The notes beneath the pieces are model-generated. The model was given only the letters and a program-made list of their open reading frames with translations. It ran no database searches and was not told where the DNA came from. From Hypanus sabinus (lineage: Eukaryota), in assembly GCF_030144855.1 (NCBI RefSeq), contig NC_082708.1, positions 52,886,001 through 52,950,000 of the forward strand: a stretch of 64,000 bases of DNA. The letters are read 5' to 3'. Shown here piece by piece: positions 31,416 through 32,839 of the stretch; the first letter of the stretch is position 1; the number at the start of each line of letters is the position of its first letter. The position numbers and the translations under genes are program-made.

Positions 31416-32839
31416 GTAAGTGTTGGAATATTGCCATCTTTAATCTTTTGCCTTCTGACTTAATTAGGTCAATGGTTGTTTATGGTTGAAAATATTATAA
31501 CAGTATACATCTAATACATTTTGTAACGAGAAACCTTTCATTTTTTTAGCGGCCTGCACAATCTTTGGTAAGGTTTATTTTCTGAATGCTACTAATACAA
31601 TGAAACTAGAAGCTTCGCTACAGTGAGATGTAGGAATCAAACATCTGTTGTCATAAATCTATTCCTGTATTGCATTATTTTTTTCCAGGTTTGTCAATTT
31701 CAAATTATACCTACACAAAATATAAACGCTTTGAAAATTAGCTTTTTGTAGCGGCAGCACACTACATTGTAATTAATATTTATATAGTAGTGGAAGAGCA
31801 CAATTTTGTAGTGAACCAGTTAATCTTGGCAAATACGTATTTTGCAATCTATCATTTTACTGTGCTGCAGGCAATAGAGTTCCCAGTTCTGCCTACACAT
31901 CCATTGGGATAAATGTTGGTTGAAAAAAAAAGGTTCATTTGAGGTTTCCAGTTATTGAAGACTCATGATGGGATTTCACCAAGCAAATCCGATCCTTCAT
32001 CTTCAGGGAAAATGGAATGGCCATCGTGTCTGGGCAAAAATTAATTTCAAATGTGTGGTAACTATGGTAATGAAATTAGCCATGTAGCTTTCATATTGTT
32101 CTAAAGCTATTTTGCTGAAATACTGTATTATACACGGAATATGACGGCACCTGCTTGGGCAGGTCACAAAAAGTTAGTCAAATCAGTAGCTTTAAGACTC
32201 TTATCAAAATGATCAGAGAGGGGGTAAGGTTTGGAAAGGGAACCTAAGCAGTGGCCTATGAATTAGTGATAAAAATCAGTGTGTGCATACATGAGGCCAG
32301 AATTGCAAGAGTGGAACTGTCCCAGAGTTTGAAAGCTGTAGGAGACTATGGAGATTGCACGTGGAGGGGTCTTCAAATGGATTGAAAACATGAATGGGAA
32401 TATTAAAGTCAAGTAATTGCTGAACTGGAGGTCCAAATAGGTCATTGAATATTAAGGTAATAGTCCAATGGGGAGGATGAAATTGGGATACAAACAAGTA
32501 GGTTGTATTATGCTTGCTTACAGGAAGTTGTGTGCAGATATTGGCATTGCAGGAGTTGCCAGTCAGTGTTAAACTCAATTGAACTTACTATGTTGAAGGG
32601 CACCTTCACTCCAGGGAAAAGAGTCCCAGCCAGTCTAGTCTCTTGTAACTTAAGCACTCAATCCTGATAACTTTGATATTTCTTCCCCCCCCCCCCCCTT
32701 TTTTAGTTTAAGCATGTCTGCCTATAGTATAGGGACTAGAACTCTGCACAATGTCCTGTCTCTACAAAGTCCCAACTCTTATACTTAATGTTCTGTCCAG
32801 TGAAGGTAAGCATGCCATTCACTGCCTTCACCATTTTGT

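Follow-up and report, generated by a model that had tools for sequence, protein, structure and literature searches.

In a 64-kb stretch of the Hypanus sabinus genome (the window, analyzed at its full length of 64,000 nucleotides), the start of one intron carries two single TA dinucleotides at the very points where two other copies of the same sequence hold transposons. The question is whether this intron preserves target sites that were never occupied or has lost its elements, and how far the history of the locus can be read from it. The first-pass annotation had proposed a fixed order, in which a promoter and an exon were duplicated, two elements inserted in the duplicate, the resulting unit was duplicated in tandem, and private insertions accumulated afterward. 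The empty-site observation is confirmed, and the evidence supports the proposed order of events, subject to the corrections of size, label and activity given below.

Three promoter copies between DYNC2H1 and DCUN1D5

The window covers the interval from DYNC2H1, on the minus strand, to DCUN1D5, on the plus strand. Coding sequence of the upstream neighbor, DYNC2H1, begins with an exon at 1377 to 1574 (minus strand), which matches the N terminus of human DYNC2H1 in 6rla (E = 0.0014). On the other side, the start-codon exon of DCUN1D5 (MPVKKKRK...), with an acceptor in front of it, was located at 39423 to 39494 on the plus strand, where further coding exons follow at 40.4 kb, 50.2 kb, and 57.5 to 58.5 kb, the last of them matching DCN1-like proteins and Pfam Cullin_binding. 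Both start exons (1574 to 1377, minus, and 39423) are without a CpG island. Two long ORFs of the window match exactly Hypanus sabinus proteins recorded in GCA_030144855.1, and a Pfam search with the seven other long ORFs of the window gave no matches.

The copies were compared by self-BLAST of the window and by alignments. All are on the plus strand. Copy 1 has its promoter and leader exons at 9230 to 11090 (exon 2 at 11026 to 11078, donor GTAAGT) and copy 2 at 21370 to 22999 (exon 2 at 22943 to 22994, donor GTAAGA), while copy 3, the one attached to DCUN1D5, extends from 29385 to 31948 and comprises the CpG island, exon 1, an intron, exon 2 (31362 to 31415), and the start of the next intron. 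About 2.55 kb, from the CpG island through both exons to the start of that intron, is common to copy 3 and to copies 1 and 2, and the acceptor and the donor of exon 2 are conserved in all three (exon lengths of 53, 52, and 54 nt in copies 1, 2, and 3), which bears out the claim that a promoter and an exon had been duplicated. Copy 3 is colinear with copy 1 over 9230 to 11090, then over 13380 to 13810, and then over ca. 45 bp after 14594; with copy 2, it is colinear over 21526 to 22999, then over 25360 to 25831, and then after 26629. The start of its intron after leader exon 2 (31416 to 31925), which covers both empty sites, corresponds to the middle segment in each case (13380 to 13810 and 25360 to 25831). 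Hence, the three-way comparison upheld the colinearity of copy 3 with both other copies on either side of both points, and it is at these same two points that copies 1 and 2 have extra blocks relative to copy 3.

The homology of copy 3 to the other two stops near 31948, ca. 37 bp past the second site. That between copies 1 and 2 outruns copy 3 both upstream, by 1.4 kb (7850 to 9230 versus 19533 to 21240), and downstream, by about 230 bp (14640 to 14874 versus 26665 to 26894), so that the demonstrably duplicated block amounts to ca. 7 kb (7850 to 14874). The present period between copies 1 and 2 is 11.7 to 12 kb, 4.7 kb of which is without a counterpart, and the spacers after the units are unrelated (14875 to 19532 versus 26895 to 29384). 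The tandem duplication as such is therefore backed by the same junction, the same orientation and the outreaching homology, but the unit of ca. 11 kb given in the first pass has to be reduced to the 7 kb that can be demonstrated.

Within the 64 kb, the only sizeable CpG islands are at 9001 to 10600, 21201 to 22500, and 29001 to 30900, i.e., those of the three copies; a 400-bp patch at 19901 to 20300 is likewise over the CpG-island threshold. Since the start-codon exon of DCUN1D5 has an acceptor and no island, copy 3 most likely supplies it with the real promoter and two leader exons. The island that was duplicated is probably the shared bidirectional promoter of DYNC2H1 and DCUN1D5, and that of copy 1 may now be serving DYNC2H1 as well. 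A search of 5500 to 9600 found no DYNC2H1 exon 1 beside copy 1.

Two transposons and their empty sites

The first extra block (2,289 bases in copy 1 and 2,360 in copy 2) contains a pogo/Tigger element on the plus strand, located at 11091 to 13379 in copy 1, with an ORF at 11668 to 13185 (505 amino acids), and at 23000 to 25359 in copy 2, with an ORF at 23642 to 25156 (504 amino acids). A splice acceptor ends at 11655 in the former and at 23629 in the latter. Private fillers that are unlike each other interrupt the 5′ noncoding part of the element, which is now an intron (11262 to 11528, ca. 0.27 kb, in copy 1 and 23153 to 23506, ca. 0.35 kb, in copy 2). The filler of copy 1 looks like an elasmobranch SINE. 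The insert had been described as a 2.3-kb Tigger; its position was correct, but that size includes the private fillers, and the element proper measures ca. 2.0 kb. Both ORFs have the Pfam domains DDE_1 (E = 2.5e-46) and HTH_Tnp_Tc5 (E = 1e-15) and retain, in invariant columns, the DDD triad (D173 in DETG, D269 in LLVDNC, and D300 in QPMDMG) with a spacing of 30 residues between the last two. In pogo DDD transposases, 29 to 36 residues are allowed between the last two aspartates, and, Fot excepted, pogo families typically duplicate a TA target (Gao et al. 2020, PMC7386202). The Pfam domains allow a safe assignment to the pogo superfamily alone. The automatic names of the relatives are TIGD4-like and TIGD6-like and, as TIGD4 and TIGD6 both derive from pogoR (PMC7386202), the narrower label of Tigger is provisional.

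The second extra block (781 bases in copy 1 and 795 in copy 2) is a small nonautonomous element (MITE), also on the plus strand, found at 13811 to 14591 in copy 1, with inverted ends of 40 nt, and at 25832 to 26626 in copy 2, where the right junction is shared with copy 1. The interior of the copy 1 MITE (14054 to 14537) is ca. 75% like the 3′ part of the large element (12712 to 13345), so the small element is an internally deleted relative of the large one, a deletion derivative of the same family. A third nonautonomous copy of the family lies in a DCUN1D5 intron (53848 to 56079, plus strand), with a TA on each side and a nested insertion at ca. 54233 to 55687, and was used as the reference for the terminal repeat of the family and for its TA duplication. 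The nested sequence (54233 to 55687) belongs to another interspersed family (ca. 70% identity), also found at 42828 to 44151, 4023 to 4581, and 16411 to 16891. The window contains, in addition, a pair of inverted repeats (47675 to 47890 and 49075 to 49288; 216 bp, 96.8% identity, ca. 1.2 kb apart) that is much younger than its other repeats.

Elements of the pogo superfamily have terminal inverted repeats that begin with CAG and are flanked by a TA duplication; both ends can be seen in the nonautonomous elements at 13811 to 14591 and 53848 to 56079. The terminal repeat CAGTGGATTCCAGTTAATTGGG has six matches in the window, versus none expected by chance, and they fall at the right ends of both large elements, at both ends of the copy 1 MITE, and at both ends of the copy at 53848 to 56079; there is none in copy 3. 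An inverted-repeat search over the whole large elements detected no terminal pair, since their left end is missing, and the repeat of the family was taken from the nonautonomous copies.

In copy 3, the first site is a single TA at 31429 to 31430 (GGAA-TA-TTGCC), 13 nt past the GT donor at 31416, where the sequence reads ggtaagtgttggaa-TA-ttgccatc (in longer context, GGTAAGTGTTGGAA-TA-TTGCCATC); copies 1 and 2 hold the large element there. The second is a single TA at 31910 to 31911 (GGGA-TA-AATG), reading ccattggga-TA-aatgttgg (in longer context, CCATTGGGA-TA-AATGTTGG), and it is here that copies 1 and 2 hold the 0.8-kb nonautonomous element. Direct reading at both positions confirmed the intact single TA that had been described. 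An excision footprint, the refuting observation named beforehand, was seen in the sequence at neither site, and the search with the family repeat gave no terminal-repeat remnant in copy 3, in agreement with the claim that both elements were inserted in the duplicate.

The filled sites are less tidy. The right junction of the large element is clean (..CCACTA-TA-TTACC in copy 1 and ..CCACTC-TA-TTGCT in copy 2, versus TA-TTGCC in copy 3). On the left, neither filled copy has kept an undamaged junction, and the TA duplication is thus visible on the right only. In copy 1, the left flank is kept as gtaagtgttgga, followed by the terminal repeat from ca. 5 to 7 nt in; the tip of the left repeat and the left TA are gone and the right end is intact. 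The junction (GTAAGTGTTGGA joined to TTTGTGGTTATTTGGG) fits a deletion of 10 bp between a pair of TGGA motifs. In copy 2, GTAAG is joined to ATTTCCAG, with six more bases of the flank lost. The simplest reading of these junctions would be a single ancestral loss of the left TA and the repeat tip, followed by an extra 6-bp loss in copy 2, and the loss of the left tip would have immobilized the element. In both copies, one terminal repeat is kept (right) and one is lost (left), and a sequence with one remaining terminal repeat and a target duplication still counts as a transposon by the criterion of PMC7386202. At the small element, the left junction of copy 2 reads CCATTGGG-TATA-CAGTG, with the flank kept, and copy 1 is without the 39 bp of flank directly to the left of its MITE. 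The right junction is CACTG-TA-TACTG-ATGTTGG in copy 1 and CACTG-TA-TATAG-ATGTTGG in copy 2, versus TA-A-ATGTTGG in copy 3, which is 4 nt shorter.

Order of events and alternative histories

The single, footprint-free TAs of copy 3, set beside the filled sites of copies 1 and 2, place the two insertions in the interval between the two duplications. We infer that the polarity is one of insertion and not of loss, and 31416 to 31925 is probably, though short of certainty, the ancestral, never-occupied state of the two TA target sites. The following history is, with a similarly good degree of confidence, the best explanation of the locus as a whole. A first duplication would have copied ca. 2.55 kb with the CpG-island promoter, leader exons 1 and 2, and ca. 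0.5 kb of intron, which left the upstream copy severed from the coding exons of DCUN1D5. Into this upstream copy, a pogo-superfamily transposon of ca. 2.0 kb would have inserted at the TA 13 nt beyond the donor of exon 2, and an internally deleted relative at the TA ca. 480 bp further on. A tandem duplication of a block of at least 7 kb, carrying all of this, would then have produced copies 1 and 2, each of which would have gained its own insertions and small deletions. The different fillers of the two large elements and the unrelated spacers are in keeping with the private insertions proposed for this last step.

Divergence among the copies is near star-like, so the order is carried by the two insertions, and this also suggests that the events were close in time relative to their age. 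For the piece of intron between the two sites, the K2P distances are 0.24 (copies 1 and 2), 0.29 (copies 1 and 3), and 0.28 (copies 2 and 3). For the piece upstream of the first site, they are 0.35, 0.31, and 0.29, respectively, with the shortest branch leading to copy 3; these values contradict a clock and do not corroborate the order of events. Between the MITE of copy 1 and that of copy 2, the distance is 0.32, hardly less than what separates them from the unrelated third copy (0.36 for copy 1 and 0.33 for copy 2). Ordering the copies by K2P or by site patterns was rejected, as divergence is too near to a star and is distorted both by conversion and by the constraint that acts on copy 3.

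Tracts of identity stand out from the CpG-island copies, the surroundings of which are only 70 to 80% identical. Copies 1 and 2 are identical over 9675 to 10516/21592 to 22438 (842 bp), save for one 5-bp indel, and nearly identical across most of the transposase ORF; copies 1 and 3 are identical over 9248 to 9469/29405 to 29626 (222/222) and 98.8% identical over 9501 to 10005/29743 to 30250 (508 bp); and copies 2 and 3 are 99.7% identical over 21592 to 21922/29920 to 30250 (331 bp). This pattern suggests that the three promoters have all recently exchanged sequence by gene conversion. None of the tracts reaches exon 2 or the insertion sites, where the identity is 0.78 to 0.86.

With conversion active at the locus, the elements could in principle have spread between copies, and this is the chief ground for considering a rival history. 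The three promoter copies would then have come first, and the elements, having entered one of them, would have moved to another by a long conversion tract or by unequal exchange. Both the near star-like divergence and the exact-identity tracts between every pair of copies, a sign of active conversion, would suit such a history. However, it needs a tract of at least 3.5 kb, and an old one, as the intron between the elements has a K2P of 0.24, whereas the exact or near-exact tracts observed are each at most ca. 0.85 kb. Besides, the 1.4 kb upstream and the 0.23 kb downstream that are found in copies 1 and 2 only fit a duplication unit. We consider triplication before insertion unlikely, although it is the strongest of the alternatives.

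Loss from copy 3 of elements already present in a single ancestral copy, by precise excision or deletion, seems very unlikely. Among three copies, a pattern of two present and one absent is formally reversible, and the sequence to the right of site 2 does differ by 4 nt from that of copies 1 and 2. Nevertheless, two separate precise losses would be needed. Excision of Tc1/mariner-type elements usually leaves a duplicated TA together with nucleotides of the element end, and at neither site is there such a duplicated TA or a remnant of the repeats. The tip of the left repeat is, moreover, missing in both filled copies and, if that loss was ancestral, no excision was possible. An equally slim chance can be given to insertions that were polymorphic before the first duplication, the pair having arisen when a filled and an empty allele underwent unequal exchange. 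A short interval between the events would be compatible with this, without anything specific in its favor, but at the time of the exchange a single haplotype must have carried both insertions, each of them still polymorphic. Finally, the least credible alternative is that both elements entered copies 1 and 2 independently at identical TA sites. The two MITEs are indeed as distant from each other as either is from the unrelated family member, but in both copies the two sites and the orientation are the same, and the same extra TA(C/T)(T/A)G follows the MITE on its right. The 11-amino-acid deletion in both proteins also fits one insertion, although little weight can be given to it, as this part of the ORF is converted. 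Insertion between the two duplications is the reading retained here.

A conserved pair of transposase genes in stingrays

The filled copies correspond to a pair of intact annotated genes. In Hypanus, the dS between them is 0 to 0.03 over most of the ORF and rises to 0.395 (dN, 0.044) in codons 351 to 400, a stretch that conversion has left unhomogenized, with a dN/dS of ca. 0.18 for the whole ORF. Mobula birostris (GCA_030028105.1) has both paralogues on one contig, adjoining DYNC2H1, and M. hypostoma has at least one, also adjoining DYNC2H1, which makes five intact ORFs in three species, with 97% amino acid identity between the genera. Orthology at the same position in Hypanus sabinus, M. birostris, and M. 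hypostoma was established from gene positions. Seven positions within residues 341 to 440 split paralogue A from paralogue B alike in Hypanus and Mobula, and these shared paralogue-specific residues indicate that the tandem duplication, and with it the steps that led to it, is older than the split of the two genera. No divergence date for Hypanus and Mobula was found in the genome papers. In residues 1 to 340 and 441 to 505, all differences split the genera and none split the paralogues, and it would seem that, outside residues 341 to 440, conversion has homogenized the pair independently in each lineage. Purifying selection together with gene conversion appears to have kept two intact copies, and the locus provides a clean case of two new genes held alike by conversion except in one short stretch. 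The element had been called autonomous, which suits its intact transposase ORF; what is found today is a conserved and probably immobilized gene rather than a mobile autonomous copy. The only annotated copy of M. hypostoma (P0124 in GCA_963921235.1) has a B-type C-terminal signature and lies ca. 10 kb from the DYNC2H1 start, the position taken by the A copy in Hypanus; it could be a product of unequal exchange or an assembly collapse.

The best named relatives outside the stingrays are from a scorpion, a bee, a spider, a reedfish, and a fluke, with 61 to 66% identity, and in our protein searches the stingray gene was seen in Hypanus and Mobula only. Judged against relatives with 61 to 68% identity (in arthropods, a reedfish, and a fluke), all the stingray proteins (P0121, P0125, P0001, P0122, and P0124) have an 11-residue deletion right after the DETG aspartate and a Tyr substituted for the conserved His of DNCAAHP, two changes that may have ended transposition with the DDD triad kept.

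As for its expression, both large elements share a conserved TTTCAG acceptor 12 nt ahead of the ATG, and the Gnomon model predicts a putative transposase whose expression would start at the duplicated promoter, with exon 2 spliced to this acceptor. The annotated 586-amino-acid isoform X1 (P0123, 21731 to 25156) joins exon 1, exon 2, and the copy 2 ORF, starting at an ATG in the GC-rich exon 1 and reading through exon 2 into the transposase. Given that the length of exon 2 differs among the copies, the extra 81 residues are probably an ORF run through the leader exons and an artifact of the annotation.

We found no paper that ties DCUN1D5 to a transposase gene and none that describes the stingray gene. 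On balance, and by a modest margin of belief, we favor the view that the pair is an undescribed, Myliobatiformes-specific domesticated pogo transposase, the birth of which can be read stepwise in one genome, through promoter duplication, landing, splicing, repeat loss, tandem duplication, and concerted evolution. Under such a stepwise birth, the odds are somewhat in favor of a splice acceptor that preexisted, of copy 3 as the preserved “before” state, and of a concerted evolution that has outlasted the split of one genus from the other.

Testing the polarity of an insertion by its empty site is textbook practice. Here, too, a filled site is compared with a homologous site that has a single copy of the target duplication, although the empty site is a paralogue in the same genome and one junction of each element is eroded; the argument itself is conventional and would not surprise a specialist. 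The catalogued domesticated pogo genes of vertebrates are TIGD2 to TIGD7, JRK, JRKL, CENPB, POGK, and POGZ, and the stingray pair is none of them (Gao et al. 2020, PMC7386202). It resembles them in its full-length ORF with HTH_Tnp_Tc5 and DDE_1, its fixed syntenic position in several species, its low dN/dS, and the damage to at least one terminal repeat in the stingray elements. Unlike them, it is a tandem pair kept alike by conversion, in which the catalytic DDD is still recognizable. A second point of comparison is the capture said to have been described by Cosby et al. in Science in 2021, in which host-transposase fusions reportedly arise by splicing of host exons to an intronic transposase ORF. 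The transposon likewise sits in an intron just after a host exon, with an acceptor upstream of the transposase ATG. In contrast to that type of capture, the stingray leader exons (52 to 54 nt) seem to be noncoding, so that a promoter and a 5′ untranslated region were borrowed and no protein domain, and the host gene was spared, a spare duplicate being used instead. By the time a domesticated transposase is recognized, the traces of its origin have usually long vanished, whereas here the promoter donor, the empty site, the filled sites, and the later duplication are all within 25 kb of one genome, and the order of promoter capture, insertion, presumed immobilization, and duplication is directly testable in other rays.
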